From: Entomortierella parvispora E1425
Taxonomy: Eukaryota; Fungi; Mortierellomycota
NCBI GenBank assembly: GCA_020891255.1
Contig: BQFW01000009.1
Span: 434,001 to 498,000, forward strand
Length of the DNA: 64,000 bases
Direction: 5' to 3'
In this document: one piece after another, positions 1,076 to 20,246 of the stretch
Layout: every line of letters starts with the position of its first letter
How positions within the stretch are numbered: position 1 is the stretch's first letter
Program-made: the position numbers and the translations under genes
The notes under the pieces: generated by a model
Database searches by the model: none
The model's input: the letters and a program-made list of their open reading frames with translations, nothing else
What the model was told of the DNA's origin: nothing

Positions 1076-2346
1076 TCACCAGGGCCGACTAAATTCCACG
1101 ATGCGGAAGGCGATCAGTTCAGTCTAGACAGATATAACTCGCTCAGTGGATCTCTGGTGGATAGTCACACGCCTGGGATACAAGCGCTGGAGAGGATGCT
1201 GTGAGAGAGGGGTTCTGGCCGGGGATCGTTCCTCATGTTCTTCAAATGAGGGCCCACTGTCGGCTCTGCCCTGTGTTCATTGTGTTCACTGTGTTCACAA
1301 GGGACACCATCGCTTTTCTGCCCTTACCCATCAATCGGATTGTTTTTCTGAAGGAAGAAGGGTCCAACGAGATGAGAGCTGATAGAGTATAGAGTCTATT
1401 AAGCCATGCATCCATATATGCATTCATTCGTTCATTCGTTTATTCTCTCTTCTTCTCTTGTAGGTCAGTCAGCATACATAGTTAAATTCGAAGACATGAT
1501 CAGATGAACAGGTGGCTAAACTATAGACAGACGTGGTGTTGGTTTGACGAACTTCCAGAATAGAAAAACAAGTCGAGAGTGTAACCAGAAACAAGGTGCA
1601 GGTCAGAGGTTGGAAAAAAAATAAAAAAAATAGCGAGAATCGAATTCAGTCCTCCTGCCCTGGTCTATTCCTCCTTGAGACAAGATACGACATCCAACGG
1701 ACAAAACAATTTGATCAACATGGGCCAATCGATGTTCAAAGGAGAGGAACAGGGGGAAGGAAAGAGAGGACTGTCGCCCGTCATCGGCATATCCACAGGG
1801 AGGGACTCGGTGTGGTCGACAGAAGTATTGTGAACATACATTGGCTGTTGATATCAGTGTGGGCTGGGTTGGAGAAAGCCGTAGGTTGTGGTGAAGACGA
1901 GGACAACAGCAAATGAAATCGAGACGTGTGGTGAAGTTGCAGAGGCTAGTGGTAGTGTTGACTGCAATAGGACAAAATGTATCTTGACTGATAGCGAGAT
2001 ATGCAACAAGAGAAGAAACAGTGGGCGAGTATGACACAGACGAAGGGGGGAGTTGTGAGCAGAGCTTCAACAGGGCAGAAAGGGACGAGACAACGCAGGG
2101 CGAGTGGACTGAGAGTCGAAGAATTCGGGGCGATGGGCGCACAGAACAGAAGACTACAGATCCTAGATTTGGGATCCTAGGTAAGAGAGGCGTACCAAGT
2201 CCTATTCTCACATCCATAACCGACAGTTCATGACACCTGTCTTTCCAATCCCTTACTTTCCGAGCCCTTGATCTTTTTACTCCCTTGTCTTTTCAGCCCT
2301 TTGGTGTTCTTGTACACTGCTGTAGTCCCTTTGTGCTCTCTCTCAA

Positions 2347-2552
2347 TGTTGTCCCTTGATGTTGTCCCTTGATGTTGTCCCTTGACGTTGTCTTTAGATG
2401 TTGTCCTTCGGTGTTGTCCCTAGATGATGTCCTTGGATGCTTCCGTTGGTGTTGTACCCTCTTGATGTTGTCCTTCAGTGTTGTCCCCTGATGCTGTTCC
2501 ATGATGTTGTCCCTTGATGTCGTCCCTTGATGATGTCCCTTGTTGTCCTTAG
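2347..2552 (+). repeat. 13-bp minisatellite (TGTTGTCCCTTGA-like), ~16 degenerate units
   Basis: Read directly: tgttgtcccttga x3, then cgttgtctttaga, tgttgtccttcgg and further variants. Confidence 0.85.
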
Positions 2553-2716
2553 TCCTTTGATATTGTTCTTTGCTTGTTCGTTGGTGTTTGCCTAGGTGCT
2601 GATCTTTGGTGTTTCCCCTAGCTGGATGATCGGCAAACACCATCGATGACCATTAAAAAATTGCCTCACCCCCTTTTGACTTGCACCAGTTTGGGAAGCT
2701 ATAGACATCCTTCGCA

Positions 2717-2723
2717 TATAAAA
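2717..2723 (+). promoter_or_regulatory. Candidate TATA box of small secreted protein gene 1, with a likely 5'-UTR intron (~2902-3020)
   Basis: TATAAAA lies about 320 nt upstream of ATG 3042 and is conserved in copy 2 (9901-9907). CAG|GTAAGG...CTATAG|G splice-like signals are present in both copies. Confidence 0.4.
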
Positions 2724-3041
2724 TGCCGCGCCTTACCTTACAGTCCTTTACCATACCACATTTGATCTCAACATATTCACCCCAGACTCGAAACAGGGAC
2801 CGCAAGAACTATTTCAAGTGCCATCGCAAGTACTGTACCTTCGACACCTGTCGCCCGCACGCACGATCAACCCCCACTCTTGACTTATCTTCCACACTCA
2901 GGTAAGGTAGTGAGACTACGATTTTCTGATTCATGAAAGGTTACAGCGACTATACTATGGCCGATACGATGATGGCTCCCTCAATCACACCATAACATCC
3001 TCATCTAATCGTCACTATAGGGAAGCAGCTATTTCTTCAAA

Positions 3042-3302
3042 ATGTTGTTCAGAACGTTTTTCGCCTGTGCCTTTTTTGCACTGTTGAGCTCATCGACAGT
3101 TTATGTGGCTGCGAGAGGTTGCACTGTGCTCGACCACGGTACCGAGAACGGCGAAAAGTTCACACGCTACTGCTGTCGATGCGATACAAATACATGTGTC
3201 GAGACTCAATCAGAAATTTGCAAGGAGCATAATAAGCGGCCGAGCGATGGTGACAGGTGCCCTAAGGGTAAATGGACCTGCTGGAAGTTCGATTACGAAT
3301 AA
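3042..3302 (+). CDS. Small secreted cysteine-rich protein 1 (86 aa; signal peptide plus 8-Cys mature domain)
   Basis: Hydrophobic leader MLFRTFFACAFFALLSSSTVYVAA, then a 62-aa region with 8 Cys (C-CC-C-C-C-C-C). The paralog at 10226 keeps all 8 Cys. Confidence 0.85.
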   Translation: MLFRTFFACAFFALLSSSTVYVAARGCTVLDHGTENGEKFTRYCCRCDTNTCVETQSEICKEHNKRPSDGDRCPKGKWTCWKFDYE

Positions 3303-3975
3303 TAGCTGGCCAAGTCGAATATAATGACAACTTAAGCTTATTGACCAGGACCATGAATGTCCCATTCATTTTTCATGCCTATGCCGCTTTTCTCTTTGAT
3401 TTATCTCTTGCCTTGCTCAACGACAGAAGATGAGGAGAGAGCAATTTTCCTTTCCTTACAGGTAGTCTTTTCTGGATTTTCGCAATAAATTTTAATTTGG
3501 ATCAAGTTTCACATCTCTACTGGGGGTGGACATGGAAGAGAAAGTCGGCATTGATGCATTCGACTGGATGGCAGAGCTGCCTTGACATGCAGCTGACAGA
3601 ACGGCAAATTAATGCGACGGAGCGATTGATCTCCGCACTCAGGATAAGTTATCCTGACGGACCTGGTTAACTCGAAGTTGCGGCCATGGTAATCCCGAAA
3701 AATGAAAAGGTAAACTAAATTTTCCCACCAGCCATTGTATTGAATCAAAAGTGCCGACATTCATTGGTGTTCACTGCAAAAGCATGTCTTCCCAAGGTCA
3801 ATTTTCCCAGCTTTCCTCTGTTCATCCGCAGACCAATCGTTTCCACCAGCTTCTTCTTACACCACTCTCATCACTCTTCCGCTTCATTTTCTTTTTCCTA
3901 GTTAGGATAACACTCGCACACTCTTTCCCTGGCCCTTCTGCCTCTCCTTCACCCTTTTCCCATATTCTTATCCGT

Positions 3976-5931
3976 ATGACAGCAAGGTCAGGCGATGAAC
4001 AGGTGCAGCTGAAAGTGATCATCGTGGGCGCTGGCATAGGCGGGTTGCTGCTGGCCATCCTTCTGGAAAAGATCGGTCTTGACTATGACATCTTTGAGCG
4101 GTCCAAGGAGGTACGCCCTCTTGGTAAGCAATGCAAGCACCATCGCCATCGCTTTTTATTTTATCTCAATCTCCCTCTAAATGCATTTGTTTTTGACAGG
4201 TTCTATCATGAGTATCGGGCCCAACATCCTTCCAGTGATTGAGCAATTGGGTCTTTTAGATGATCTCTTGAAGTTCTCCTTTCCAGTTCCAACCCTGAAC
4301 ATCTACAACGAGGACATGAGTCATGTTGGAACGACATCCTTTGAGGCCTTCAAAGAACGGTAAATGGCTGGCTGAAGGAAGGAAGGGGGAAGAGGGCTCA
4401 GGCAAACACCACTCGGCCACTGGACTAACAATCTCTGTGTAACTTGGTACCTTTTTTTTTTTTTTTTTTTTGAAGTGGCGGCTATGATTTCTTGGCCTTC
4501 AGTCGGCCAGACTTTCACCATCTGCTGTTGTCACAGATCCCAAGCCATAAGCTTCACCTGGGGAAAAAGGTCCTTTCTTTGCTGCAGGGAGACCGTGGTG
4601 CCATGATCAGGACCTCTGATGGTAAAACCCACGAAGGAGATATTGTTGTGGGTGCCGATGGTGCTCACAGCGCCATCCGCCAGTGCTTGTACGACCGACT
4701 GGCCGAGGAGAACAAGCTGCCACGATCGGATAGCACAAACCTCGATCTGGGTTACAATTGCATGGTCGGGGTTGCTACAGGACTCGACTCAGAAATATAC
4801 CCTGGGCTGAAGGATGGACACGCCCATTTTTGCACAACTGTTGCATACAATGTTCCTCATTCGGCAAGCCTTTGCATTCTCAGTCATTTGGGGATAAAGG
4901 AATCAGATGTGTCTGCTGAGAGAGATCTAATCGTTCTTGTTTTCTTTCTCATCGCAACAAACAGTGGCGGATTTTCATGGTTCCCGGTAATAGGATATGT
5001 TGGAGTGTCTCTGTCCAGATCACCCTCAACGAGGGAAAGACTCAAGCGATGCGCAATTCAGAGTGGGGCCCTGAGGCCATCGAGGACATGGTCAAGTTGG
5101 TAGCGCACCACAAGGTTCCTGTGGGAGGTACACTTGGAGACTTGATCGAGGCTACTCCAAAGGATCTCATCTCCAAGGTGGTCCTTGAAGAAAAAATGTT
5201 TGAAACCTGGTATCATGATCGAACTGTTCTTCTTGGAGACGGTAAGGATGTGCTACATAAACAGCCAGGAGCTATATAGCTGTACTCCCACAATCTCACC
5301 CAGGCTCATTTCCTCCGAATTTTAGCCTGCCACAAAATGATGCCCAGTGCGGGACAGGGCGCCTGCAACGCAATGCAAGGTAAATCTTCTTGCCAGTCGC
5401 AAGGCCAAAAAGTTTTAGCCCGTGAAAAACTCAAAGCATCCATCACTCACACAATTTCAATATCACACACACAGACGCCGTAATCCTTGCCAACTGTCTC
5501 TTTGACCTTCAATCTGGATCCATCGAAGACATCACTGCTGCCTTCAAGTCTTACAAGAACCAACGGTGAGGAAAGATCTTGCAGTGACAAATTGTCGGCT
5601 GGGTGCAATCAAACTCACTTTTTTTTTTCTCTTTCCATTTTGAAGTTACCCACAAGCGAGTGCTCAATTCAAGATCAGCCAGCAAGTAGGAAAGATCTTT
5701 TATGGTCACTCGTTTACAGAGCGTATGATCCGCTATGCAATCTTGAACTGGGCACCAAAGAGCCTGGAGTCTGGCAACTTTGTCAAGGCTTATTCCTACA
5801 GACCACAGGCGGTGTTCTTGCCCCAGGTTGAGGACCGAGGGCTATTTAAGGCGCTGCCTCAGCACGAGTCGAGGAGAATGAAGGCCTGCGAGGAAGCGGC
5901 CAAGAGCCAGCGGCAGCCTCAGCCGCTGTAG
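3976..5931 (+). CDS. FAD-dependent monooxygenase (FAD_binding_3 type), multi-exon
   Basis: IIVGAGIGG Rossmann motif, VVGADGAHSAIR (DG motif), and VLLGD|ACHKMMPSAGQGACNAMQ (GD motif) across GT-AG introns such as 4124-4199. Confidence 0.9.
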
Positions 5932-6114
5932 CTGAAAGAACACGAAGACCGATCAAATAAGCGAAATAAACTATACTTCCGCCACTCAGCGGACAACACA
6001 ATCTGACGTCTTATGTCTGGGAGATCATGTTTTGGCCCCTTTACAGCTTCGTGGATCAGTATTAACATAATGCACGATACTCTCTTGACTCAATTCGGTT
6101 TTAATGTTTACTTT

Positions 6115-7584
6115 CTACAAAGGCAGCGTCCACCTCTTCTTATTGTAGGAGCCAATTACAGGTCTGGGAGCCGATTCAAGTCGCCTCCAGTGGGTAGCCA
6201 TCCAAGAAACATCAGCATTTGAGAGTGACGATGGCTTTGCAAAGTCGACGTACTTCAGGTGCGCAAGTCCCTTCAGGGCGTCCAAACCAACATCCAATCG
6301 ATAGCAGAGGCCATTGTGGTCTCCGACGTGGTTGTCTGTCCACAGCTTTTCGAGGTTGGTCAAGAGTCCCAGCTTCCTATGAAACGCAGCATGGCCCTCT
6401 GGTCCGCTGTAGACGCGAATCGTCACCTTGAAAGATTTTAGACCCAGACAGACCCAACGGTGCGAATCAATGCCCTCATAAATGTCTCCATCGTGCATCA
6501 CGGGGGCCGAGAACGTTTTGATATTGGGAAGGGTCGCGAGCATTTTGTGGATCATGTTGCTGGTCACATACCTGCAATTGTCTAGGTTCAAAGTTTCCAG
6601 AGTCGCCACAAGGCGTGGAGATCTTTGAAGAGCGTTCCATATGTCTTTGTCAAACCCCGAGTCCTCCAAATCCAATTCTGTCAGATCTGCTTCAGCCCTA
6701 GCCTCTATGATTTGGTCAAGGCCCCAGTGCAGGTCCAGACGGAGACTGGTTAAATGAGGCCATTGATTCCCCTTCAGGCAGTCCAGAAATTCTTGCAGTG
6801 CTGTTCGGTCCGTAGAGCTAGAGCCGTTCAACAGGCAGATGTGCCTCAGATCGGGGCAGAGTTTCAAGAATTCAGTGCATCCTGAAATCTTTAGCTGATA
6901 GATTTTCCTCAAAGAGAACCGACGGATGCTCATCATTGGTCCCTTCAAGAAGTCTGCCTTTTCCTGTTCGTCCTTCCAGGGTTTGAGATCATCCGCTGGG
7001 AAATGGACGTCATGAAACTCCAATTCCTTGAGTCGCGAGTATCTCCAGGCCTTAACACAGAGTCTCCAGTACTTTTCGTATTGCATCGCTCGACCACCCA
7101 GGTAAACGGATTCTAGGGCCTTGCAGTGGGTCATCCATTCAAATTCCATCTGGTCGTCATTGTAGAGTTGTCCAATATAGATACGCTTGAGAGTGTGACC
7201 GTGCTTTTTCATAAAGGGCTCAAGATCATCATTTTCGAGATGACAGGCGTAATTGTCTTCAAAAGTCAGGACGGACAGATGAGGAAAAACAAGGGTGTCT
7301 GATTTGACAATGACGTCTTGGAACGGCATGATATTGCAGATCAGAGTATGGACAAAGGGGGCGTGCAAGATGATGGTCTGGATGCCCGGATGTCGGTAGG
7401 ATTCCAGTCGGAACTCGCGCCAGAGATTGGGCGTAAAGCTCTTTTGCCAGCCTTTGCAGACTCGGATACAGATGGTCAAGATCGTCGGGGTGAGGTAGCG
7501 GACTAGGTGGTCGCGGATTTTTGGATGGGTAATGACACTGTCTATCTTTTTGCCAGGGTGGCGTATGAGAAAGTGGGGAGCCAT
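6115..7584 (-). CDS. F-box/leucine-rich-repeat protein (489 aa, intronless)
   Basis: N-terminal F-box-like HPKIRDHLVRYL..CIRVCKGWQKSFTPNLWR followed by LxxLxL repeats (CPDLRHI, WPHLTSLRL, LETLNLDNC, WVCLGL). Confidence 0.8.
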   Translation of the reverse strand: MAPHFLIRHPGKKIDSVITHPKIRDHLVRYLTPTILTICIRVCKGWQKSFTPNLWREFRLESYRHPGIQTIILHAPFVHTLICNIMPFQDVIVKSDTLVFPHLSVLTFEDNYACHLENDDLEPFMKKHGHTLKRIYIGQLYNDDQMEFEWMTHCKALESVYLGGRAMQYEKYWRLCVKAWRYSRLKELEFHDVHFPADDLKPWKDEQEKADFLKGPMMSIRRFSLRKIYQLKISGCTEFLKLCPDLRHICLLNGSSSTDRTALQEFLDCLKGNQWPHLTSLRLDLHWGLDQIIEARAEADLTELDLEDSGFDKDIWNALQRSPRLVATLETLNLDNCRYVTSNMIHKMLATLPNIKTFSAPVMHDGDIYEGIDSHRWVCLGLKSFKVTIRVYSGPEGHAAFHRKLGLLTNLEKLWTDNHVGDHNGLCYRLDVGLDALKGLAHLKYVDFAKPSSLSNADVSWMATHWRRLESAPRPVIGSYNKKRWTLPL

Positions 7585-7640
7585 GGGCGCACAATACAGA
7601 AGGTAGGGAATAAAAACAGAGATGAGAGATGAGGCAGAGT

Positions 7641-7688
7641 AGAGATGAATGTAGAGATGAATGCAGAGATGAATTTAGAGATGAATTT
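7641..7688 (+). repeat. 12-bp tandem repeat AGAGATGAATNN x4 upstream of the F-box gene
   Basis: agagatgaatgt agagatgaatgc agagatgaattt agagatgaattt. Confidence 0.75.
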
Positions 7689-9631
7689 GGAGACGAAAGA
7701 AGGAAGAGGTCTCTGGCTCCTCTTCTCGCAGGAAGAGCTGCGGGCCCTGACCTTGCGGCGGACACAGCCCAGCACGAGGCGGATCGACACGCGAAGGACA
7801 CGCGTAGATTAGTCGAATTTTTATTCTAGAATATTATTGTGACTATCAGGTAGAAATGACCCAGAGAAAATTTATTAATATGGCGCTCAGTTGTAATTGA
7901 CGAGACAGAAAGCAGATTTGACCTGAGAATACTTACATAAGTTGAGAGAGAACTCAATTCCTGACATGGGGTCGACTCGCGATACATGTGGAAGGTTTTG
8001 ATCCAGACCTATGGTGCTGGTGTTCGTTCGGGGGTGCGACCAAAGAATGGTGCCTGTTCGCAAAACATATACGCAAAAGATGTTCGCAAGTCTAGAGTGA
8101 AGCGGGTGGAGGTGGAAGTTAGCTTTGGATCATCATGTGCCCATCCAAGGATCAGTGTTGATCAAACTCTCAAACGAACAAGCAAACTGCAAATAGACTC
8201 GTGTTCGCAAGGAGAGACCGCATCACGCAGGTCTCTGATGGAGTCTAGATGACGACAGTATGAGAAGTGAACGTTGAGTGACCATCTCTACAGCACCAAC
8301 GCAAAAGACAAGGTCTGAAGGCCGCGTCTGTTCCACAGGGAGGCACTGCCTTTGTCCTTTTGTCCTTAAAAGCTTTACACGAACCTGAAGGTTATATAAC
8401 GAGGCAAGGAACGATCGTTCACCAGACGAAGGAAAGTCAGTATGGATGCTCGAACAACCTCTAGCAAGGCTCCTTGGTACAAAACTTCCAAAGAGAGCAG
8501 AACATTTACCTCGTCATCGTCCTCTCCTCTCGTCGACCTCCTCGAGCTTCTTGTGTGGCCGTAGGTGTGTGTCTAGGTGTGTGGTATTCGGTAGTTGGGG
8601 GGGATGGAAGTGGGGGGGGGGGGGGGGAATGGGATGGTGGGTAAGTTGAGAAAGAAAGAAAGGAAAACCGAAGAGGTGCAGGTCTTGGCGGGCAGTTTTC
8701 AAGATTGATCGCGGTGACTGCTCAATGTGTTTCATTTTATCATCATGATATCTGCAAGATTATTTTTTTTTAGGCGCAAAGCACAATAATAAGAACTTTT
8801 TAATCCAACTATCGTAAGGGCCCAGGACTGAGATCTGCATGCCCCTTTCTCCTCTTTTTTTTTGGGAGGACCTTGGGAAGAAATAAATAGGCAGGTTTTG
8901 AAGAGTCGAATTCACTCCTCCTGCCCCGGTCTATTCCTCCTTGAGACAAGATACGACATCCAACGGACAAAACAATATGATCGACATGGGCCAATCGATG
9001 TTCAAAAGGGAGGAACACGGGGAAGGAAAGAGAGGACTGTCGCTCATCATCGGCATATCCATAGGGAGGGACTCGGTGTGGGCGACAGAAGTATTGTGAG
9101 CATACATTGGCTGTTGATATCAGTGTGGGCTGGGTTGGAGAAAGCCGTAGGTTGCGGTGAAGACGAGGACAACAGCAGATGAAATCGAGACGTGTGGTGA
9201 AAGTTGCAGAGGGTAGTGGTAGTGTTGACTGCAATAGGACAATGTATCCTGACTGATAGCGAGATATGCAACAAGAGGCGAAAAGAGAACAAACGGAAGA
9301 AGAAACAGTGGGCGAGTACGACACAGACGAAGGGGGGGAATTGTGAGCAGAGCTTCAGTAGGGCAGAAAGGGACGAGACAGCGCAGGGCGAGAGGACTGA
9401 GAGTCGAAGAATTCGGGGTGATGGGCGCACAGAACAGAGGACTACAGATCCTAGATTTGGGATCCTAGGTAAGAGACGCGTACCAATTCCTATTCTTACA
9501 TCCATTACCGACAGTTCGTGACACTTGTCTTTCCAATCCCTTACTTTTCGAGCCCTTGATCTTTTTACTCCCTTGACCTTTTCCTTGTCTTGTACAGTAC
9601 AATGCTGTAGTCCCTTTGTGCTCTCTCTTGA

Positions 9632-9705
9632 TGTTGTCCGCTGATGCTGTCCCTTGATGTTGTCCATTGATGTTGTCCTTAAATGTTGTCCCTTATTGTC
9701 CTTGG
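9632..9705 (+). repeat. 13-bp minisatellite, ~6 units (shorter homolog of 2347-2552)
   Basis: tgttgtccgctga tgctgtcccttga tgttgtccattga tgttgtccttaaa and further units, at the homologous position. Confidence 0.75.
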
Positions 9706-10225
9706 TCCTTTGATATTGTTCTTTGCTTGTCCATTGGTGTTTGCCTAGGTGTTGATCTTCGGTGTTTCCCCTGGCTGGATGATCGGCAATATTGGGGAGT
9801 TCAGGAAGTAGGAATACAAACACCATCGGTCACCATTCAAAAAATGCCTCACCCCCCTTTTGACTTACACCAGCTTGGGCAGCTATGGACATCATCTTCG
9901 TATAAAATGCCGCGCCTTACCTTACAGTCCTTTACCATACCACATTTGATCTCAACATATTCACCCCAGACTCGAAACAGGGACCGCAAGAACTATTTCA
10001 AGTGCCATCGCAAGTACTGTACCTTCGACACCTGTCGCCCGCACGCACGATCAACCCCCACTCTTGACTTATCTTCCTCACTCAGGTAAGGTTATGAGAC
10101 TACGATTTTCTGATTCATGAAAGGTTGTAGCGACTATACTATGGCCGATGCGATGACGGCTCCCTCAATCACACCATAACATCCTCATCTAATCGTCACT
10201 ATAGGGAAGCAGCCATTTCTTTAAA

Positions 10226-10489
10226 ATGTTGTTCAGAACGTTTTTCGCCTGTGCCTTTTTTGCGCTGTTGAGCTCATCGACTGTTTATGTGGCTGCGGCA
10301 GGTTGCAGTGTGCTGGACCACGGCATCGAGGAAACCGAGGACGGTTTTGCGTTCACACGCTACTGCTGTCCATGCGTCACAGGTGTATGTGTCAAATCTC
10401 AAACAGCAGTTTGCAAAGAATTTAATATGGAGCCAAGCGATGGAGACAGATGCGGTAGGGGTAGATGGACGTGCTGGAGATACGGTTAA
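10226..10489 (+). CDS. Small secreted cysteine-rich protein 2 (87 aa), paralog of 3042-3302
   Basis: Identical 24-aa leader, the same 8-Cys skeleton, and shared FTRYCC, PSDGDRC and WTCW blocks. Confidence 0.85.
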   Translation: MLFRTFFACAFFALLSSSTVYVAAAGCSVLDHGIEETEDGFAFTRYCCPCVTGVCVKSQTAVCKEFNMEPSDGDRCGRGRWTCWRYG

Positions 10490-10662
10490 GAATTATAGCT
10501 GGCCAAGTCGAATAACATGACGACTTAAGCTTATTGACCAGGACCATGAATGTCCCATTCATTTTTCATCCCAATGCCGTTTTTCTCTTTGATTTATTTC
10601 TTGCCTTGCTCAACGACAGAAGATGAGGAGAGAGCAATTTTCAATAAATCTTAATAAGAGGT

Positions 10663-11007
10663 TTGGATCAAATTGACATTAATTTTTGCCGCCCTGTCAG
10701 CCGCATGCCACAAGTGGAGACCAGCGCAGGCGTGTGCATCAACACGCCTTGCGTGTCTGCGACCCGCTTTCGACCCGCTTGGCTGGTTATTGGGACTGTT
10801 TTTGGGTCCTGCGAAGCGTCTCCGTCGCACACGCTCACATTTATTTTGTGCTCAACTCAAGCGAGTTGTACAACACGTACGCAGGTTGACCCCCCAAAGT
10901 GCACTTTGTCGACAAGCGTTTCACATCTCTACTGGGGGTGAGATGAGTGGACATGGAAGAGAAAGTCGGCGTTGACAGAACGGCAAAATTAATGTCAATT
11001 GATCCAA
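10663..11007. repeat. ~41-bp imperfect inverted repeats enclosing ~345 bp (MITE-like)
   Basis: 10663-10703 ttggatcaaattgacattaatttttgccgccctgtcagccg versus the reverse complement of 10967-11007, ttggatcaattgacattaattttgccgttctgtcaacgccg. No target duplication is evident. Confidence 0.5.
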
Positions 11008-11232
11008 GCGGAAGCGGCCATTGATCTCCGCACTCAGGATAAGTTGTCCTGACGGACCTGGTTAACTCGTTCTACTTCGGAGCAATCACATATTGTTAAA
11101 CGTGATCCATCTTTATTTTAGCGCCTCCAAAAAAAAGAGAAAAAGAAATTTTTCGAGGATCATGAACCTCACCATCTTTTCGCTGGATCCCCTCCGCGTT
11201 TTCATTGCCTCCATTCCTACACTGTTTCACTT

Positions 11233-12168
11233 ATGTCTAATGGACACTCCTCTGACGGACCTTCGGCTCAGATGGCCGCCGATCCCGTTCCCCTTGATGT
11301 CAGGATGGCCCAGCTGGAACAGCAGTTGGCCGCACTCATTGGCATCCACCAGAAGTCAACTGGTGACTTCGATCCCGAGCTCTTTCCCCTCCAGTCTACT
11401 CTCGGATACGTTCCCAACCAGAATTTCATCGACCTCACTACGTTCGGTTCTGGTTGTCTTCTCAAAACTCCATTTTGTTTGGCGCCGTTGGCCCCCTCTG
11501 AAAAAGCAGCTTTCGCAGCAAGAAGCCCTGCCATTGTTGGCTACGACTATTCCACCCCCGTGCCACCAGAGGGACTCTCCCTCCCTGCAGAGCTTAAAGC
11601 GCACGATAAGCAGCTGTCCGACATTCAGTTCCAACTGTCCCAAACAACCAAGTACTTGGATTATTTCATGGAACGTACGTCCCGGGTGCCTCAGGACCGT
11701 CTTCCTTTCCTCACGGTCATGGAACATCTTGCCGGCATCCGCCGCCTCCTGTCCGGTCAGGCTTCTGCGATCTCGCAAACCCGACTCGATAACATCGTCC
11801 GATGGGTCAACCCCAAGGTCAAGAACCCTCCCCAGGTATCCAGCGCCTCTGCGCCTTACTTGGTGGAGACCAAGGTCATGGCCGACCTCTTGGCAGTCAT
11901 GGAGACAAATACTCGCATTTGGCAGCCTCAAGCCAAGTCCTCAGAGCCGGGTTCATCCCGCAAAGGCCGTGCCAGGCCTAAGAAAAAGCCCCGTGGTCGT
12001 TCCCCCGAAGCTAAGACAACTCGTTCCGCGTCGTCCCAACCTCAGGCTCAGCCTGAAAAATCTTCGGAGCCGGTTTCATCGGGCACGACCAGATCTACGT
12101 CTTCAGGCCCTAAGGGCAAAGACAAGTCGGGTTTTTCTCGCCCTCCTCCTCAGAGCCGGACCCAATAG
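11233..12168 (+). CDS. gag: DIRS ORF1, Gag-like (311 aa)
   Basis: First long ORF of the element, upstream of and overlapping pol, with a basic low-complexity C-terminus. Assigned mainly by position. Confidence 0.7.
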   Translation: MSNGHSSDGPSAQMAADPVPLDVRMAQLEQQLAALIGIHQKSTGDFDPELFPLQSTLGYVPNQNFIDLTTFGSGCLLKTPFCLAPLAPSEKAAFAARSPAIVGYDYSTPVPPEGLSLPAELKAHDKQLSDIQFQLSQTTKYLDYFMERTSRVPQDRLPFLTVMEHLAGIRRLLSGQASAISQTRLDNIVRWVNPKVKNPPQVSSASAPYLVETKVMADLLAVMETNTRIWQPQAKSSEPGSSRKGRARPKKKPRGRSPEAKTTRSASSQPQAQPEKSSEPVSSGTTRSTSSGPKGKDKSGFSRPPPQSRTQ

Positions 12169-15100
12169 GAGGGCGGTTAGCACGTTTCCGGTCAGCCTGG
12201 CGGCGTCTCACGGACGAGCGCTGGGTTCGCTCGACGATCGAGAAGGGGTTCAAGATTCCCCTGACCTCGATCCCACCAGTGTCAGCGACAAAGACAGTCT
12301 CGTACCCACTGTCTCTCGAGGCCCAAGCAGCCTTGGACGAGGAGGTCCTGCAACTCCTCACCAAACAAGCAATCGAGGAAGTCTCCCCATCGGAGGAGGG
12401 ACATCGGTCCCCCCTTTTCGTGATAGCCAAATCGAATGGCAAACTTCGCCCAGTCTTAAATCTACGACAGGTAAACTCCCATCTTCCACGCCACCGCTTC
12501 AAGATGGAGTCGGTACAACAAGTTTGCCGTATGATTCGGCGCAAGGATTGGTTGACATCCATCGATCTAACGGACGCGTTTCTTCACATTCTCGTCCATC
12601 AGGCGTCCCGCAAGCTCCTTCAGTTCGATTGGGGTGGCCGTCGTTTTCAGTTCCGAGTCCTCCCTTTTGGCTTGTCCCTAAGCCCATGGGTCTTTACGAA
12701 GATCCTTCGCCCAGTCATCAGATGGGCGAGATCGGTGGGCATCCGTCTCTCCCCGTACTTGGACGACATCCTCTTGGCAGCGTCTTCCAAGACCTTGGCT
12801 CGGGCCCAGGCCCAACAGGTCCGAGCGAAGCTAGAGAGCCTGGGTTATCGGATCAACCTCGATGTAACAGGAATACGGTGACATCACGCGATGTGTACCT
12901 ACAAAAGCTAGAAACTTGCAATATAATAAAACTCACTTCTTGTCTCCACTCCACCCTCGATACTCCTATTGCATGGTAGCAAAGGTTTTCGATCCACTGA
13001 CCTCACTGACCCACTGACCCTCCGACACACTTACACCCTGGACCCCCTCGTATCCCTCTTCGATCAACTCTCCCTCGACAATTCACCCAACATGGACCCC
13101 GCGACACCGTCATTCAAATTCCCTCATCCAACACCGTTCAACGGCAAGCGCGACGGATTCTCTGTTCTCGGTTTTCTGAAACGCATGACCTTTTTCTTCG
13201 ATGGCGCTGGAATTGCCGAACCTCGCAAGGTCGGGGTTACCCTTGCCTTTGCCGGCGATGAGGTTATCGGCTGGTGGGCACTCTTAAACAAGCCATCCGA
13301 CACCTCATTCCCGGATTTCAGCGAGCTCCTTGCCACCGAGTTCAGTCCTGCGAAGTTTAAGGAGCACATTCTCGCCCTCACAATGCAAATGAAAATGACA
13401 CTACCATTGAACATCTCCAACGTCATGGCCTATATTACCAAAGCCCGTGAATACCACCTGCTCCTCCAGTCTTACTACGCCGACAACGCAGTTCTCAACG
13501 ATACTATCCGTACTGCCTTTCTCAGTGGTGCACCTACTCAGCTTCGCCAGATGCTGGAAGTGGCCATTGTTAATGCAGGCAACGACACCATAGATCTGCC
13601 CAGACTCTTTAAGGCCGCGGAGGAGTTCGGTCGTATCTTCCACACTGAAGACCCATCACTCGGTGCCAAAGCACTGGCTGCCTCGGGATCCTCTGCTGGT
13701 ATCACCGACCCCAACGCAATGGAAGTGGACAATATTCATATCCAACTCAACAATATCCACAAGCAACTCGGCACCCTTCACCGCTCCTTACAGAACCGCC
13801 CCACCAACGGTACTAACAACCCTTCTCGAGATCGCCCCGCACCCCTGACCGCCGCCGACCGAGAGTACCTTGTACGTAACGGTGGCTGCTTCCGCTGCCG
13901 CGAATTGGGTCACATCAGTCCCAATTGCCCTAAGTACGGCAACGGCAGCCGAGGAATTAATCAAGTAACCGCGGGTGAATCCCCTGATTCGGGAAAAGCC
14001 TCCGGCAACTAGGGTCGGTCCGGACCCCAGTTGTCGAAACTGTAGCCAACAACCCTGAGCTAAGTACCTCAAATAAAACTTCACTTGATTCTACACCTCA
14101 GAAACATGACTCCAATCATGACAAGCGAACTCACATCCACGATGCTCTGGTTGTTCTATCGGACCGAAACCAAAACCAAACCAAAAAACCTGTTGCCTCG
14201 CCCGCTCCAGTTGCCCTGTCCGCTCCTCTACCTAGATCCTCCGATACAGATGAACCGGACCCTCTCGCTGTACCGCCGGCACCTAGTGTACCTCTGTCCA
14301 AAAGTCAGTTGAAGAAGTTGAAGCGTCGTGCGATTCGCCTACACGAATTCACTGTCCAAAAGGCAGAGAGCCAACTGCTCACTTTCATCGGTTCTGTCAA
14401 TGGCCACGCTGCCAGAATCCTGATTGATGGTGGTGCAGAAGGTAATATTATCAGTTCGTCTTTTCAAAAGCGACACCAGCTCCTCCGCACTGAATGCTTG
14501 CCCATCCCCATCCTCCTCCCCAATGGCTCTTCCTCCCTCACATCACACACCGTCCCCATCACCCTCAACCGCAGCGACTACTCCGATTCGCTCAACCCTA
14601 TTCTCTATCCTCTCAACAAATACGACCTCATCCTTGGCAAACCCTGGCTCACCAAAGTTAACCCTTGCATCAATTGGCGCACCAACGATCTTCATTTCAC
14701 TCACAATGGAATCGATGTCAAATGGAGCTGCCGCGGCTTCAAGGCCGATCACATCCAAAGCCGCACCAAAGGACTCCTCCTCACACACATGCACTTTCAT
14801 TCCATGGCAACCCTGCCCGGCTCGGAGGTGTTCCTGGCCCTTATTCGCAACACCCCAGAGCCCTCTGAAGAAACTGACCAACCGCGTACAATTCCCGATA
14901 TGACCCCAGAGGTGCGGTCCATTGTCATGGAAGAGTTCGCTGATGTCTTTCCGGAGAAACTCCCGGACGGCCTGCCCCTAGACCGTGGTGATGCTATGAA
15001 GATCGAGACCGACCCGACAGCCGACCCACCCTTCCGCCCTGTCATTAGACTTTCAATCGCCGAGCTTGACGAACTTCGCAAACAACTGGACCAATTGCTA

Positions 15101-18100
15101 GCAGCAGGTTTTATCAAACCCAGTACCTCTCCCTATGGCGCCCCCGTGCTCTTTGTGCGGAAGAAGGACGGCACACTCCGAATGTGCGTCGACTACCGTG
15201 GCCTCAACAAGATCACCAGGAAGAACAGACACCCGTTGCCCCGTATCGACGAGCTACTTGACCGCTTCCGTGGAGCACGCTATTACTCCAAGTTGGACTT
15301 GTTATCCGGTTATCATCAGCAGCGTATCTTTGAACCACACACACACAAGACTGCCTTCCGTTGTCGCTATGGTCACTTTGAGTTCAATGTTGTTCCCTTT
15401 GGCCTTACTAACGCTCCTGCTTCGTTCCCCAATATGATGTTGCGAGTACTCGATCCAGTCTTGGACAAATGGGTTGTCGTGTATCTCGACGATCTGTTGA
15501 TCTACTCCAAGACAAAGAAAGAACACCTGCAGCATCTCCGAAGCGTCCTGGCTCTCCTCCGCAAGAATGGTCTGTACGCGAAATTGAGCAAGTGCTCCTT
15601 CATGCAAGACGAAACTGAATTTTTGGGCCACACCATCACCAAGGACGGGATCAAAACATCGGCCGGGCTCAGCAAAGCCATCAGTGACTGGCCCACCCCC
15701 AAGAGCACAAAGGACGTCCAGCAATTTTTGGGGCTTGCGCAATTTTATCAACAGTACGTATCGGGCTTTGCAGGGATTGCCCTCCCTCTCTCTTCCCTCC
15801 TCGCCAACAACACTCCCTTCAAATGGACCGACGAACAACAATCTGCATTCCTTCAGCTCAAACGCGCCATCTGCTCCGCCCCCGTCCTCCGCATCTTCGA
15901 CCCTGATCTCTCACCTTTGTCGAAACAGATGCATCCGGTTTCGCCATCGGTGCAGTGCTGCTGCAGACTGACCGGGAAGGGAATACCCATCCCATCGCAT
16001 TCACTTCCAGGAAAAATGCAGTCAGCTGAGCGGAACTACCCTGTCCATGAGCAGGAACTGTTGGCTGTCATCCATGCGCTCCGCACTTGGCGCTACTACC
16101 TCGATGGAACCAAGTTCAGCGTCCACACCGACCACGCCACCCTCCGCCACTTCCCCACACAGCCCAAACTCACTCGTCGACAGGCTCGCTGGATGGAGTT
16201 GCTTCAGGAATACGACTTTGACTTCAAGTACAAGCGAGGAGTTGACAACATCGTCCCAGACGCTCTCTCCCGACGACCGGACTACCGCGAGCCTGACCCT
16301 GTTGAGCTATACAACCTCAGCGTCTCCCTGTCCCCGGACGTCCGTGACCAGCTTGTCCAGGACTACAACGACGATCCTCGACTTGGACCCATCTACAAGG
16401 ATTGCCTGGATGGGAAGGTTGCCAATGGATATTCATTCCAGAACAACCTCCTCTACTTTACCCGACGTGGAGCAACCACCCTGGCCATCCCTCGGCACTC
16501 CCCGATCCGCCTCACTCTCTTGCACGACGCTCACGACTCTGCCACTGCTGGACACTTTGGTTTTCAAAAGACTTACGACAACCTGCGCCGTTTCGTATAT
16601 TGGCCCCACATCGCCAAGGATACCCAGCAGTATGTAGCAACCTGCGAGAAGTGTCAAAGGAACAAGGACTCACAGGATCGACCAGCTGGACTCTTGCAAC
16701 CGCTACCCATTCCTTCGCAACGTTGGGAGGTAGTCACCATGGACTTCATCGGCCCTCTTCCGCCCACAGCTAGAAATTTTGACGCCATCACAGTGTTTGT
16801 CGACAAGCTGACCAAGCAAGCTCACTTCGTCCCCAGTACTACCTCTGCCACAGCCGTCGACGTCGCCCACCAGTTTTTTGACAACATCTTCAAGCTGCAT
16901 GGCACACCAACATCCATCATCTCGGACCGCGACACTCGATTCACTAGTAGATTCTGGCAAGAGTTGCACAGGCTAATGGATGTCAAACTTGCACTGTCAA
17001 CCGCCTACCACCCACAGACGGATGGGCAGACAGAGGTTATGAACAAGACGCTGAAGACTATGTTGAGAGCGTTTATTGACAACAAGCAGTCTAACTGGGA
17101 CCAGCTCCTTCCGTCACTGGAATTCGCCTATAACAACGCTGTCAATGCATCCACGGGATACTCGCCGTTCTTCCTCAACTCTGGCCAGCACCCTCGTCTC
17201 CCCACCGCTCTCCTCGGTAAACCCAGCAGCTCAGTCCCCACTGTCGATACCTTCCTGACTGAGCAGGCGACCACCCTTGCCCTGGCCCAGGATGCTCTGC
17301 AGCGTGCTCAGGATCATCAGGAGCAACAGGCAAACAAGCGACGACGGGATCACAAGTACAAGGTTGGCGATAAGGTCCTGCTGCGTGCCACCAATATCAC
17401 CATCCCTGCCGACAGTATCAGACCAGCCGATAAACTTCGACCTCAATTCCTTGGCCCGTTCACACTTTTGGAGCAACACTCACCTGTCACCTTCCGCGTC
17501 GAGCTGCCACCATTCTACAAAATCCATGACGTCTTCCACGTTGATACCTTTCGACCCTATTTGCCGTCCCCGGAGTCACTCGGCATTCGAGCTCCTGCCC
17601 CCGTGGATCCCACTGTAATTGACGGCGAAGAGGAGTATGAAGTGGACGAAATTTTAAAGTACCGCTTCTACCGCAGACAACACCAGTTCCTAGTGTCATT
17701 CAAAGGCTACGGCAGAGAAGCTGACGAATGGCTCCCAGTAAGCAACTTGGACAACTGCATGGACTTGGTCACAACCTTCAAAGAGCAGCACGGTATCATT
17801 TTTTAAAAGGGGAAGGTGTAACAGGAATACGGTGACATCACGCGATGTGTACCTACAAAAGCTAGAAACTTGCAATATAATAAAACTCACTTCTTGTCTC
17901 CACTCCACCCTCGATACTCCTATTGCACTCGACAAGTCCGTTTTCAAACCGACTCAGGTTATCAAACATCTCGGCTTCTTCATCAACACCCGCAAGATGA
18001 CCCTGTCCCTTCCCAAGGACAAGGTGCGGGATCTTCGTCGGGCAGCTCTACACCTGTTCCAGTCAACGCTGGTCCCTCTGCGTCGATTGGCCTCCTTTTT

Positions 18101-19115
18101 GGGCAAGGCCCAAGCCGCGGTTTTAGCGGTCCTGCCCGCTCGTTTGCAGACCCGCCGCCTCTTGTCCTGCAAGGACACTGCTCTCGCTTCAGGGAAAACA
18201 TGGAGCGACTCCACCACCCTAACTCCGGGAGCCAGAGAGGACCTGGAGTGGTGGTGCGACCACCTAAGGAGCTGGACAGGACAGTCTTTCCTTCCACAAC
18301 ACCCGGACGTGGAGCTCTTCACGGATGCGAGCGACTGGGGTTGGGGCATTGTGACAGCGACCGAGACCTTATCAGGACCGTGGTCGACAAAGGAAAGACT
18401 CCAGTCTATCAACTGGCGGGAACTGCACACAGTCTGGAGAGCGATTCAGGATCCAGACATCAAGGGCAAGGTAGTACGAGTTCATTCCGACTCGACAACC
18501 ACGTTGTCCTACATCACCAAGTTCGGGGGAACACGTTCATCCCCCCTGATGGATCTGGCTCGTCTCATTTGGGATTACTGTCTGGGGACAGGAACCCGAA
18601 TCATGACGACATTCATCCAGTCCGAGGACAACCCTGCGGACATCCCATCGCGCAACCTGTGGCTCCAGACAGAGTGGTCACTCAGTCGCACCTCCTTCCA
18701 GCGGATCGATCAGCAGTTGGGTCCCCACTCCATCGATCTCTTTGCGAGTCGGGAGAACCACCAGCTCCCGAGATTCGCGACGTGGCAATGGGATCCCCAG
18801 GCAGTGGCGACGGACGCCCTCTCGATCCCATGGAAGCACGAGAGGATCTTCGCCTGCCCCCCGTGGGCGATGATATCGCACACCCTGTCCAAGATGCAGC
18901 GGGAGAGAGTCTCAGGCACCCTAGTCACTCCCCTGTGGCACTCGGCGATCTGGTACCCGACCCTCCTGGACCTACAGGTCGGTCCACCGCTCATTCTCCC
19001 AAAGGAAGAAGGACACGCCTTTTTTCCCGACGGGAATCCTCTGCCCTGGACGTTGGCGGCGTGGAAGCTCAACGCCAACGCATCGAGGGTCAAGGCGCGT
19101 CACCGGCTACTGTGA
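12114..19115 (+). CDS. pol: DIRS pol: reverse transcriptase, RNase H and adenine-methyltransferase-like domain; split by the Gypsy (pieces 12114-12862 and 17933-19115)
   Basis: PIGGRL..F..W, GFKIP, SIDLTDAF, VLPFGLSLSP and YLDD. The rejoined junction reads INLD|KSVF. RNase H motifs FTDAS, RELH, SDS and PAD. MT-like motifs DLFAS and CPPW. Confidence 0.93.
12863..12973 (+). repeat. Gypsy 5' LTR (111 bp)
   Basis: TGTAACAGG...TATTGCA, identical to 17817-17927, and contains AATAAA. Confidence 0.96.
12974..12984 (+). promoter_or_regulatory. Primer-binding site, probably for initiator tRNA-Met
   Basis: TGGTAGCAAAG directly follows the LTR. TGGTAGC is complementary to the 3' end typical of tRNA-iMet; the host tRNA sequence was not checked. 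Confidence 0.6.
13092..14012 (+). CDS. gag: Gypsy Gag with CCHC zinc knuckle
   Basis: PTPFNGKRD capsid-like start and CFRCRELGHISPNC knuckle. The first in-frame ATG downstream of the LTR and PBS is at 13092. Confidence 0.9.
   Translation: MDPATPSFKFPHPTPFNGKRDGFSVLGFLKRMTFFFDGAGIAEPRKVGVTLAFAGDEVIGWWALLNKPSDTSFPDFSELLATEFSPAKFKEHILALTMQMKMTLPLNISNVMAYITKAREYHLLLQSYYADNAVLNDTIRTAFLSGAPTQLRQMLEVAIVNAGNDTIDLPRLFKAAEEFGRIFHTEDPSLGAKALAASGSSAGITDPNAMEVDNIHIQLNNIHKQLGTLHRSLQNRPTNGTNNPSRDRPAPLTAADREYLVRNGGCFRCRELGHISPNCPKYGNGSRGINQVTAGESPDSGKASGN
13988..17806 (+). CDS. pol: Gypsy Pol (protease, RT, RNase H, integrase, chromodomain), reached by -1 frameshift; carries a compensated internal frameshift
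   Basis: The frame is open from 13988. Motifs: ILIDGGAEGN, YLDD, HHCC zinc finger, DDE (MDFI, SDRD, QTE), GPF, and chromodomain EEEYEVDEIL...WLPVSNL. Confidence 0.93.
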   Translation, partial: FGKSLRQLGSVRTPVVETVANNPELSTSNKTSLDSTPQKHDSNHDKRTHIHDALVVLSDRNQNQTKKPVASPAPVALSAPLPRSSDTDEPDPLAVPPAPSVPLSKSQLKKLKRRAIRLHEFTVQKAESQLLTFIGSVNGHAARILIDGGAEGNIISSSFQKRHQLLRTECLPIPILLPNGSSSLTSHTVPITLNRSDYSDSLNPILYPLNKYDLILGKPWLTKVNPCINWRTNDLHFTHNGIDVKWSCRGFKADHIQSRTKGLLLTHMHFHSMATLPGSEVFLALIRNTPEPSEETDQPRTIPDMTPEVRSIVMEEFADVFPEKLPDGLPLDRGDAMKIETDPTADPPFRPVIRLSIAELDELRKQLDQLLAAGFIKPSTSPYGAPVLFVRKKDGTLRMCVDYRGLNKITRKNRHPLPRIDELLDRFRGARYYSKLDLLSGYHQQRIFEPHTHKTAFRCRYGHFEFNVVPFGLTNAPASFPNMMLRVLDPVLDKWVVVYLDDLLIYSKTKKEHLQHLRSVLALLRKNGLYAKLSKCSFMQDETEFLGHTITKDGIKTSAGLSKAISDWPTPKSTKDVQQFLGLAQFYQQYVSGFAGIALPLSSLLANNTPFKWTDEQQSAFLQLKRAICSAPVLRIFDPDLSPLSKQMHPVSPSVQCCCRLTGKGIPIPSHSLPGKMQSAERNYPVHEQELLAVIHALRTWRYYLDGTKFSVHTDHATLRHFPTQPKLTRRQARWMELLQEYDFDFKYKRGVDNIVPDALSRRPDYREPDPVELYNLSVSLSPDVRDQLVQDYNDDPRLGPIYKDCLDGKVANGYSFQNNLLYFTRRGATTLAIPRHSPIRLTLLHDAHDSATAGHFGFQKTYDNLRRFVYWPHIAKDTQQYVATCEKCQRNKDSQDRPAGLLQPLPIPSQRWEVVTMDFIGPLPPTARNFDAITVFVDKLTKQAHFVPSTTSATAVDVAHQFFDNIFKLHGTPTSIISDRDTRFTSRFWQELHRLMDVKLALSTAYHPQTDGQTEVMNKTLKTMLRAFIDNKQSNWDQLLPSLEFAYNNAVNASTGYSPFFLNSGQHPRLPTALLGKPSSSVPTVDTFLTEQATTLALAQDALQRAQDHQEQQANKRRRDHKYKVGDKVLLRATNITIPADSIRPADKLRPQFLGPFTLLEQHSPVTFRVELPPFYKIHDVFHVDTFRPYLPSPESLGIRAPAPVDPTVIDGEEEYEVDEILKYRFYRRQHQFLVSFKGYGREADEWLPVSNLDNCMDLVTTFKEQHGIIF
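17805..17816 (+). promoter_or_regulatory. Polypurine tract
   Basis: AAAAGGGGAAGG lies immediately before the 3' LTR. Confidence 0.85.
17817..17927 (+). repeat. Gypsy 3' LTR (111 bp)
   Basis: Identical to 12863-12973 and followed by the TSD CTCGA. Confidence 0.96.
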
Positions 19116-20071
19116 CCATTTTTTCACAGTCAGCTCTCGCTCGCTCTCGAGCAAAGTCCTACAGCTCCCCCCAGAGGGCCTGGATCGCGTATTGCTCGGA
19201 CCAGGGCCTCGATGCTCAAGCCCCGTCCCCCTTCCAGGTCTTGAACTACCTTTCGGAGCAGATCACGACCAAGAAATGGTCTCTGGGCACAGTCAATGCC
19301 CATAGATCGAGTATCCTCAACATGCTCTCTAATCGAGATCTGATCTGGGCGAACCCCTTCTTCAAGGAGTTCTTTTTGCATTTGAGCAGCGATCAAATCC
19401 GTGACCACACCAACAGCCCTGTCGATGTTTCTCCAGTCCTCGAGTTCTTCACCAATTTGGGTCCGAACGATGGCCTCAAGGACGACCTATTGGTGCCCAA
19501 ACTTTGTTGGTTGTTGGCGGTCTGCGGTTTCATGCGCCCATCAGATATTGCCCGCATTGACTTGGCTCACAGCCAGGTCCTCTCCTCGGGGGCTTTGGAG
19601 CTCCAAGTCCTGGGCCCCAAGGAGAAAAGACAGAATTGTCCAATCATCAAGTCTGTCTTCATTCATCCCCACGACAACCCCCTTTTTTGTCCTGTCGAGG
19701 CGTACAAGTCTTATGTTGCACGCCTAGAGGGTTCGTCAGTCAAACCCGTGAAGCATCCTCGCATCAATCGGGAATACTTACCGTTGATTCGACACATTCG
19801 TATGGGGGACAGGGTGGTCGGTTCTCAGACCATTAGCCGCCATATCAAGAATGTCTCTTCTCGGATCCCTCGTCAAGAAGGTAGCTCAATGCCATCCGGT
19901 CGCTCCATTGGCTCATCTCTGGCAGTAGAGCACGGTGCATCCGTCGACGAAGTGCAGGCCCAAGGGTTTTGGGCACACTCAGCGACGTTCGATGCCTTTT
20001 ATCGGCTTTCCAAGCGGACCACGACGAATTTGACTAAAGTCACTCTTACTGGTCCTGTCTCTTTGGAGTAA
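17933..20071 (+). CDS. DIRS tyrosine recombinase; catalytic domain ~19100-20068, with the frame open back to ATG 11162 once the Gypsy is removed
   Basis: WIAYC/LNYLS N-terminal domain, FMRPSDIAR, GPKEK, FCPVEAY, SGRSIG, GFW and TFDAFY. Stop at 20069-20071. Confidence 0.92.
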   Translation, partial: QVRFQTDSGYQTSRLLHQHPQDDPVPSQGQGAGSSSGSSTPVPVNAGPSASIGLLFGQGPSRGFSGPARSFADPPPLVLQGHCSRFRENMERLHHPNSGSQRGPGVVVRPPKELDRTVFPSTTPGRGALHGCERLGLGHCDSDRDLIRTVVDKGKTPVYQLAGTAHSLESDSGSRHQGQGSTSSFRLDNHVVLHHQVRGNTFIPPDGSGSSHLGLLSGDRNPNHDDIHPVRGQPCGHPIAQPVAPDRVVTQSHLLPADRSAVGSPLHRSLCESGEPPAPEIRDVAMGSPGSGDGRPLDPMEAREDLRLPPVGDDIAHPVQDAAGESLRHPSHSPVALGDLVPDPPGPTGRSTAHSPKGRRTRLFSRRESSALDVGGVEAQRQRIEGQGASPATVTIFSQSALARSRAKSYSSPQRAWIAYCSDQGLDAQAPSPFQVLNYLSEQITTKKWSLGTVNAHRSSILNMLSNRDLIWANPFFKEFFLHLSSDQIRDHTNSPVDVSPVLEFFTNLGPNDGLKDDLLVPKLCWLLAVCGFMRPSDIARIDLAHSQVLSSGALELQVLGPKEKRQNCPIIKSVFIHPHDNPLFCPVEAYKSYVARLEGSSVKPVKHPRINREYLPLIRHIRMGDRVVGSQTISRHIKNVSSRIPRQEGSSMPSGRSIGSSLAVEHGASVDEVQAQGFWAHSATFDAFYRLSKRTTTNLTKVTLTGPVSLE

Positions 20072-20167: not shown

Positions 20168-20246
20168 AAACGTGATCCATCTTTATTTTAGCGCCTCCAA
20201 AAAAAAGAGAAAAAGAAATTTTTCGAGGATCATGAACCTCACCATC
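20149..20246 (+). repeat. 98-bp direct repeat of DIRS left-end sequence 11079-11176
   Basis: Identical apart from one base (agcaatcaca versus agcaatctca). Confidence 0.93.

Follow-up and report, generated by a model that had tools for sequence, protein, structure and literature searches.

Two linked genes for putatively secreted eight-cysteine peptides in Entomortierella parvispora, with strongly diverged mature code between weakly diverged flanks

How a module for secretion and expression can stay uniform while its product differs is a question raised decades ago for conotoxins and for amphibian peptides, and it is still argued whether a mutator, recombination or selection provides the answer; for conotoxins, an idea of 'focal hypermutation' has been proposed. 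A further precedent is concerted evolution in which a selected segment is kept distinct, as in the red and green opsin genes, and in MHC genes, in which introns are homogenised and the exons for peptide binding are old. In conotoxins, published synonymous divergence (Ds) spans 0-0.13 for the signal exon and 0.34-0.68 for the mature exon (PMC3862624). Here we analyse two linked genes for small cysteine-rich peptides in the Mortierellomycota fungus Entomortierella parvispora E1425 (assembly GCA_020891255.1), located in a 64,000-nt stretch of contig BQFW01000009.1 (positions 434,001 to 498,000, forward strand; hereafter the window, to which coordinates refer unless another source is named). Synonymous divergence between these genes is 0.13 in the leader and 0.44 in the mature part, numerically like the conotoxin superfamilies, and a preliminary description of this DNA, which had likened the pair to toxin or antimicrobial-peptide families, was apt as far as the pattern is concerned.

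The open reading frames (ORFs) at 3042-3302 and 10226-10489 are the only ones in the 64-kb window to pair a signal-peptide-like start with at least six cysteines. Each gene appears to consist of a TATA promoter, an exon and an intron in the 5' untranslated region (5'UTR), and a single coding exon for a signal peptide and a disulfide-rich mature peptide. The features are as follows, those called putative being read from sequence signals only (pI, isoelectric point; pLDDT, predicted local distance difference test score):

3042-3302, plus strand: ORF of peptide gene 1, 86 amino acids
10226-10489, plus strand: ORF of peptide gene 2, 87 amino acids
3042-3113, plus strand: signal-peptide code of gene 1, 24 codons, predicted cleavage after VAA
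10226-10297, plus strand: signal-peptide code of gene 2
3114-3302, plus strand: mature eight-cysteine domain of gene 1 with stop codon, 62 amino acids, pI 6.9, AlphaFold2 mean pLDDT 80.5
10298-10489, plus strand: mature eight-cysteine domain of gene 2 with stop codon, 63 amino acids, pI 5.2, mean pLDDT of best AlphaFold2 model 82.0
2717-2723, plus strand: TATAAAA box of gene 1, opening a 177-nt tract identical in both copies; gene 2 counterpart 9901-9907
2724-2901, plus strand: putative core promoter and 5'UTR exon 1 of gene 1, without ATG; gene 2 counterpart 9908-10085
2902-3020, plus strand: putative 5'UTR intron of gene 1, 119 nt; gene 2 counterpart 10086-10204
3303-3489, plus strand: 3' flank of gene 1, AATAAA at 3484; gene 2 counterpart 10490-10648, AATAAA at 10643

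The ATG-free stretch of both genes terminates in CAG followed by GTAAGG, the donor of the putative intron, whose other signals are a CTAAT at 3005 and a TAG acceptor. These signals are kept in both copies, 4-5 ATGs lie inside the intron, and 21 nt of 5' leader separate it from the ORF. Signal peptide and cleavage site were judged by inspection, from the n/h/c-region layout and the -3/-1 rule, and we infer that both peptides are secreted. Cysteines occupy positions 3, 20, 21, 23, 28, 36, 49 and 56 of the mature peptide, the pattern of the pair being C-x16/19-CC-x-C-x4-C-x7-C-x12-C-x6-C with a single CC pair, and the grand average of hydropathy (GRAVY) of the two mature peptides is -1.27 and -0.38.

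Divergence between the two copies changes sharply from segment to segment:

Far upstream flank: 32/650 differences (4.9%)
2641-2722 (gene 2 counterpart 9825-9906): 13/82 differences (16%)
2723-2901: 1/179 differences (0.6%)
Putative 5'UTR intron: 6/119 differences (5.0%)
Signal-peptide code: 2/72 differences (2.8%), both silent
Mature region: 45/186 differences (24%) and one 9-nt in-frame indel
3' flank, 3303-3449: 7/147 differences (4.8%)

The mature code is about ten times more diverged than the flanks, silent and four-fold sites included. It differs at 45 of 186 positions against 63 of 1270 in the pooled flanks (Fisher p=3e-15); its synonymous differences exceed the flank rate (binomial p=1e-8), and 6 of its 14 four-fold sites differ (p=3e-5 for an expectation of 5%, as in the flanks). 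This excess rejects an explanation by amino-acid selection alone, which the preliminary description had already thought insufficient, since silent and four-fold sites exceed both the leader and 1.3 kb of non-coding flank about tenfold in divergence. The excess at silent sites implies that the mature segment and the flanks have different histories and, on a rough clock, the mature domains would be about ten times older than the flanks. By the two-breakpoint maximum chi-square method, the divergent block is 3114-3301, a result that 0 of 200 permutations reach, and the breakpoints, which the preliminary description had proposed to look for at the leader/mature and stop boundaries, coincide with the first mature codon after the predicted cleavage (VAA) and with the stop codon. 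Within the flanks, 177 positions in a row are identical (2717-2893, starting at the TATA box; permutation p=0.002), and they adjoin the 82-nt window with 13 differences (p=0.012). The linked repeats therefore hold segments of significantly different divergence with sharp limits, according to both the maximum chi-square and the 177-nt run, as is required for gene conversion. Given 16% divergence just upstream of the TATA box and 0.6% downstream of it, the regulation of the two copies may differ, if the genes are expressed. A 30-nt indel between the copies, at about 2634, lies near the 16%-diverged stretch.

Nei-Gojobori estimates are dN 0 and dS 0.13 for the leader, and dN 0.256 and dS 0.44 for the mature part, giving an omega (dN/dS) of 0.58 that is not different from 1 (p=0.2); without the cysteine codons, the mature omega is 0.64 (p range 0.2-0.28 against 1). 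Differences in the mature code are distributed 13/18/14 over the three codon positions, and many codons differ at two or three of them. The ratio of transitions to transversions is 26:20 in the mature region and 41:22 in the flanks (p=0.43), such that the spectra are alike.

These values bear out all of the earlier hand counts. We find nine differing sites in the 319 nt upstream (2723-3041, 2.8%), where about nine had been reported, and the two synonymous changes of the 72-nt leader recur; the mature domains, put at about 60% identity, are 62% identical in protein, with the reported 3-residue indel (one in-frame 9-nt indel) and all eight cysteines kept (8/8), and 9 of 38 identical-residue codons differ, close to the 9 synonymous differences among about 36 conserved codons given before. 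The different C-termini are real, but are caused by a TAC/TAA point difference at one codon and not by an indel. Likewise, the near-identical 319-nt promoter holds as to identity but not as to extent, because the repeat is a 2.15-kb block interrupted by a DIRS element, with heterogeneous flanks (1/179 versus 13/82), and the term 'hypervariable' for the mature domain is overstated for two sequences with an omega of 0.58, not above 1. A mature dS equal to flank divergence together with a dN/dS well below 1, which the preliminary description had counted against its own interpretation, is not what we observe (dS 0.44 against about 5%; omega 0.58).

With conotoxin precursors, and likewise with those of spider toxins and frog antimicrobial peptides, the pair shares a near-invariant signal peptide and a strongly diverged disulfide-rich mature peptide; as in conotoxins, both dN and dS are elevated in the mature code, whose cysteine framework and cysteine codons are kept. 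The toxin-type pattern of conserved leader and divergent mature part is accordingly found here on dN and dS, without a dN/dS above 1 in the mature part (0.58, against above 1 in conotoxins). There is no sequence or fold relationship to conotoxins, two members stand here against dozens, a propeptide is lacking, and leader and mature code share one exon, whereas the conotoxin exons are parted by long introns. A further difference is that the non-coding flanks are measurable here and are also young, and this, together with the unchanged mutation spectrum, favours recombination over a mutator. In its mosaic divergence, its young flanks and introns, and its sharply limited coding segment that is old at silent sites too, the locus resembles the opsin and MHC cases; it differs from them in that the protected segment would be the whole mature peptide of a fungus, and in that two sequences only are available, against multi-species trees.

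The explanation that we favour, with a probability of roughly 45%, is that the flanks of the linked copies have been made alike by non-allelic gene conversion, while two distinct old mature domains were kept. The mature domains would have split long ago (dS about 0.44-0.6), and their surroundings would have a much younger ancestry, of about 5%, and of less than 1% for the core promoter and 5'UTR exon. Repeated conversion between direct copies 7.2 kb apart would homogenise promoter, UTRs, intron, signal peptide and 3' flank, and the mature segment would escape, either because converted genes, encoding two identical peptides, are selected against, or because dense mismatches stop or reject the heteroduplex. 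The outcome would be one common expression and secretion 'chassis' carrying two different peptides. Both the conversion mechanism and the selection that keeps two variants are what we infer from the pattern of differences. Non-allelic conversion is common between direct repeats at such a short distance. The segments of the flanks differ in age, an identical run standing beside a 16% window, and repeated conversion tracts between linked repeats would yield such a pattern; the 177-nt identical tract suggests that conversion has been recent. In addition, neither the mature domain nor the promoter and leader occurs a third time in the 38.9-Mb, 20-contig genome, and a donor for an imported cassette is consequently not present there.

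The wider setting of the genes bears on how this explanation fares. Both ORFs are carried by a direct dispersed duplication of about 2.15 kb, with copies 7.2 kb apart (self-BLAST and pairwise alignment), and the parts of the locus are:

1636-3791, plus strand: block A with peptide gene 1, immediately upstream of a FAD-monooxygenase-like gene
8902-11069, plus strand: main part of block B with peptide gene 2
11070-20367: DIRS-type retroelement inside the 3' flank of peptide gene 2
20368-20483, plus strand: terminal 116 nt of block B, parted from its main part by the DIRS insertion
1405-2150 (about 745 nt): repeat R, within the far-upstream flank; block B counterpart 8902-9439, truncated
2286-2564: 13-nt minisatellite upstream of gene 1; block B counterpart 9584-9717, shorter
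6115-7584, minus strand: single-exon F-box-like protein gene, 489 amino acids (weak match, E=0.0035, below the Pfam cut-off)

Homology between A and B begins at 1636 and fades at about 3791-3840. When the DIRS element is excised in silico, 3622-3791 aligns unbroken to 11017-11069 plus 20368-20483 (161/170). Block A is a preserved empty site for the element, the alignment being seamless over the excision point. A third copy of R, on another contig (C15:452478-453222), has no adjoining peptide gene and is about 10% diverged from A and B; the segment 1405-1635 is common to block A and this C15 copy, and is absent from block B. Over 499 shared sites of R, 39 group A with B against the C15 copy, 12 group A with the C15 copy, and 11 group B with it, which implies that A and B are sisters with equal rates (12 versus 11 sites) and that R is older than the split of the A and B flanks. 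On this comparison, block B is the derived, truncated copy. R itself holds no Pfam-recognisable ORF, and may be a mobile element or a segmental copy. The minisatellite has a unit close to GTCCCTTGATGTT; translated from the minus strand, it gives long ORFs in which a 13-residue unit recurs, and it may be coding or merely a satellite. Contigs C8, C9 and C11 carry related arrays, and such an array also lies just downstream of the orthologue of a neighbouring transcription factor in a metagenome relative (L007 5974-6093).

The best homologues of this transcription factor come from Gryganskiella, Dissophora, Podila, Linnemannia and Entomortierella. Its gene and the FAD-monooxygenase-like gene lie tail to tail in Gryganskiella, whereas here the F-box gene, block B and the DIRS element intervene; by this comparison, the F-box gene and block B occupy an insertion between genes that are adjacent in Gryganskiella. 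Among the orthologue loci examined, the monooxygenase adjoins the transcription factor in Gryganskiella only, where the contig stops about 150 nt upstream of the monooxygenase start, and a synteny search at the transcription-factor orthologue loci of Gryganskiella, E. beljakovae, Linnemannia, Podila, Dissophora and one metagenome relative found no peptide gene within reach. At the Gryganskiella cystojenkinii locus (L008), the monooxygenase-like gene occupies 13576-15366 on the minus strand and the transcription factor 10001-13579 on the plus strand, with nearly overlapping stop codons; the former is uncalled in its record, probably because the contig ends within its 5' region. The FAD-monooxygenase-like gene of the window contains introns and was searched exon by exon. 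For the F-box neighbour protein, no homologue was found at E<=1e-10 in 5.8 billion protein clusters.

Several points weigh against homogenisation of the flanks by gene conversion. Divergence is equal on either side of the mature domain (10/212 on the left, 7/147-148 and 9/170 on the right, and 32/650 far upstream), which one whole-block event fits better than separate conversions do. The outer block ends are non-homologous junctions, with B truncated relative to A, and these junctions, together with a repeat R that predates the A/B split and yet differs from its C15 copy by only some 10%, would read naturally as a young duplication needing a later replacement of the mature segment. Constraint as the cause of low flank divergence is rejected overall, with 1.3 kb including intron and 3' flank all near 5%; for the 177-nt identity, a function of core promoter and 5'UTR that tolerates little change could be the cause instead of recent conversion. 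The comparison is one of two sequences with no outgroup, in which an omega of 0.58 and codon-position counts of 13/18/14 do not demonstrate selection for diversity, and the exact products of both ORFs are absent from a 15-billion-protein collection that holds the neighbouring F-box protein. The equal divergence and the outer junctions would suit the main rival, a young duplication, which we hold possible but less probable than conversion of the flanks. In this history, B originated about 5% divergence ago as a copy of the whole block at A, and the mature segment of one of the two came from a much older source, either by conversion from a since-lost paralogue or because the duplication itself united two long-lived, strongly diverged alleles of a single locus and so made a balanced polymorphism permanent. 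Equal flank divergence on both sides, the outer junctions and the truncated R in B all speak for such a history, as do the position of B in a lineage-specific insertion between genes abutting in Gryganskiella, and the sister relationship of A and B with equal branch lengths against the C15 copy. Yet a donor for the mature domain or leader is found neither in this genome nor among 1.84 billion protein representatives or metagenome contigs, the heterogeneity of the flanks still demands extra events, and allele capture presupposes a polymorphism kept in balance over a long time, which nothing here supports. The preliminary description had offered import of a mature cassette and homogenisation of the flanks side by side; the differing histories that it saw are upheld, while the two options are not separated, as no third copy or orthologue was found.

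Two further accounts dispense with recombination. Young duplicates might have changed very fast in the mature code alone, under positive amino-acid selection and perhaps a local rise in mutation rate, in a manner that would mirror conotoxin exons, where Dn and Ds are both up in the mature part (PMC3862624), and that is compatible with differences spread evenly over codon positions and with the many codons showing two or three changes. We consider this quite unlikely, because silent change exceeds the flank rate about tenfold, also where the residue is unchanged (9/38 codons; 6/14 four-fold sites), omega is only 0.58, and the substitution spectrum is the same as in the flanks and is not the C-to-T change of repeat-induced point mutation (RIP); RIP or a special mutator is rejected on this spectrum. 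Moreover, leader and mature code directly adjoin inside a single exon, and any mutator would need to become active over a span of 15 nt, for which we know of no mechanism in fungi. Alternatively, the ORFs could be non-functional, either open by chance or remnants in decay within intergenic DNA that was duplicated, the divergence peak being a neutral accident. Their absence from public annotation despite the use of RNA-guided AUGUSTUS for strain E1425 (PMC8759367), the lack of homologues in protein searches, and an omega not significantly below 1 (p=0.2) could be read in this way. The exact products have no record in public assemblies either, although this look-up may exclude the window's own genome and shows only that the ORFs are unannotated. 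This account is nevertheless very unlikely: in a simulation with 45 random substitutions, an open frame and all eight cysteines were kept in 0.04% of cases (P=0.0004), showing coding constraint on the cysteine scaffold; the sole indel is 9 nt long and in frame; the canonical signal peptide has no amino-acid change between copies; both copies retain the TATA box, the ATG-free leader and the signals of the intron; and a peak bounded by the mature domain is not expected from neutral decay. AlphaFold2 also gives both mature domains the same topology of beta-hairpin, short helix and C-terminal strand with confident scores, although for copy 2 the four other models are poor, which leaves moderate confidence in the fold. 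Pseudogenisation is rejected by the open frames and the kept cysteines, and the sequence evidence identifies the two ORFs as genuine, linked paralogous genes. Gene conversion of the flanks between these genes remains the explanation that we prefer.

The pair is a two-member family without detectable relatives, and a known conserved family, which the preliminary description had held against itself, did not emerge from Pfam, protein, metagenome or PDB searches. Pfam gave no family at E<=1 for either peptide, Opy2 included, and a word-index protein search gave no match for either. An exhaustive profile search of the 1.84 billion protein representatives returned one spurious bacterial repeat protein only, a PDB sequence search only noise at E>1, and the ESM Atlas no usable match (best score 0.82). 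Metagenome contigs, scanned with a protein pattern and with a degenerate DGDRC-x4-WxCW DNA pattern, yielded only chance matches in frames with stops. Own-genome protein searches returned only the two copies themselves, and no other eight-cysteine peptide gene. Two families were rejected on these grounds, namely the antifungal proteins AFP/PAF (PF11402; no Pfam match, and an Atlas feature score of 0.76 at rank 5, below the lead threshold), and an Opy2-derived eight-cysteine peptide family (no Opy2 match at E<=1, and only the pair in own-genome searches).

The predicted fold is likewise without a clear structural match, as Foldseek found none at E<=0.001 for either model in PDB and viral structures. 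The best VIA-align scores (Z 4.1-4.4) are to C-type lectin-like entries, with 43-44 of 118 residues aligned, and are at noise level; a C-type lectin-like domain is rejected on this score and because the peptide is half the size of that domain of about 120 residues. At Z 2.7-3.2, below the tool's stated noise level, there are alignments of 44-45 residues (2.1-2.7 A) to PsDef2, NsD7 and 6bl9 U-SLPTX15-Sm2a, the last a centipede toxin that we take to be a defensin of the cysteine-stabilised alpha-beta (CS-alpha-beta) type. Like these defensins, the products are small secreted eight-cysteine peptides, with the last 46 or so residues strand-helix-strand-strand in both models; unlike them, they are neutral or acidic (pI 6.9 and 5.2), have an extra N-terminal strand and lack the CxxxC/CxC pairing. 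The CS-alpha-beta cysteine signature is rejected, since the helix (mature residues 32-38) and the last strand have one cysteine each and the sole CxC, at 21-23, is in strand 2. Fungal hydrophobins are also small and secreted, with eight cysteines including an adjacent CC pair, but they have two CC pairs and are hydrophobic; a hydrophobin identity (PF01185 / PF06766) is rejected on one CC pair instead of C-CC-C-C-CC-C, GRAVY values of -1.27 and -0.38, and no Pfam match at E<=1.

Judged by their class, that of small secreted disulfide-rich proteins, the peptides probably act extracellularly on other organisms and, by the same analogy, may serve in defence, competition or interaction. The pair exposes an annotation gap, as small secreted cysteine-rich peptide genes, at least this orphan pair, are missing from the public annotation of this Mortierellaceae genome. 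The pattern of divergence is already known; what is new is an orphan peptide family, its occurrence in a fungus and a contrast so sharp inside one exon. With young flanks and an old mature domain inside 2 kb, and in a single exon, the locus provides a compact test case for what keeps a module of secretion and expression the same when its products differ. The peptides are also candidates for antimicrobial or other interaction assays in a fungus that carries endobacteria. Legume NCR peptides police rhizobia and, by analogy, the peptides of this pair might act on biotic partners, for example by policing Burkholderia-related endobacteria, while the keeping of ancient mature cassettes by selection on one chassis might be a general habit of the genome; we regard this extension as unlikely but, if true, it would be the first such case in early-diverging fungi, with a new disulfide-rich fold.

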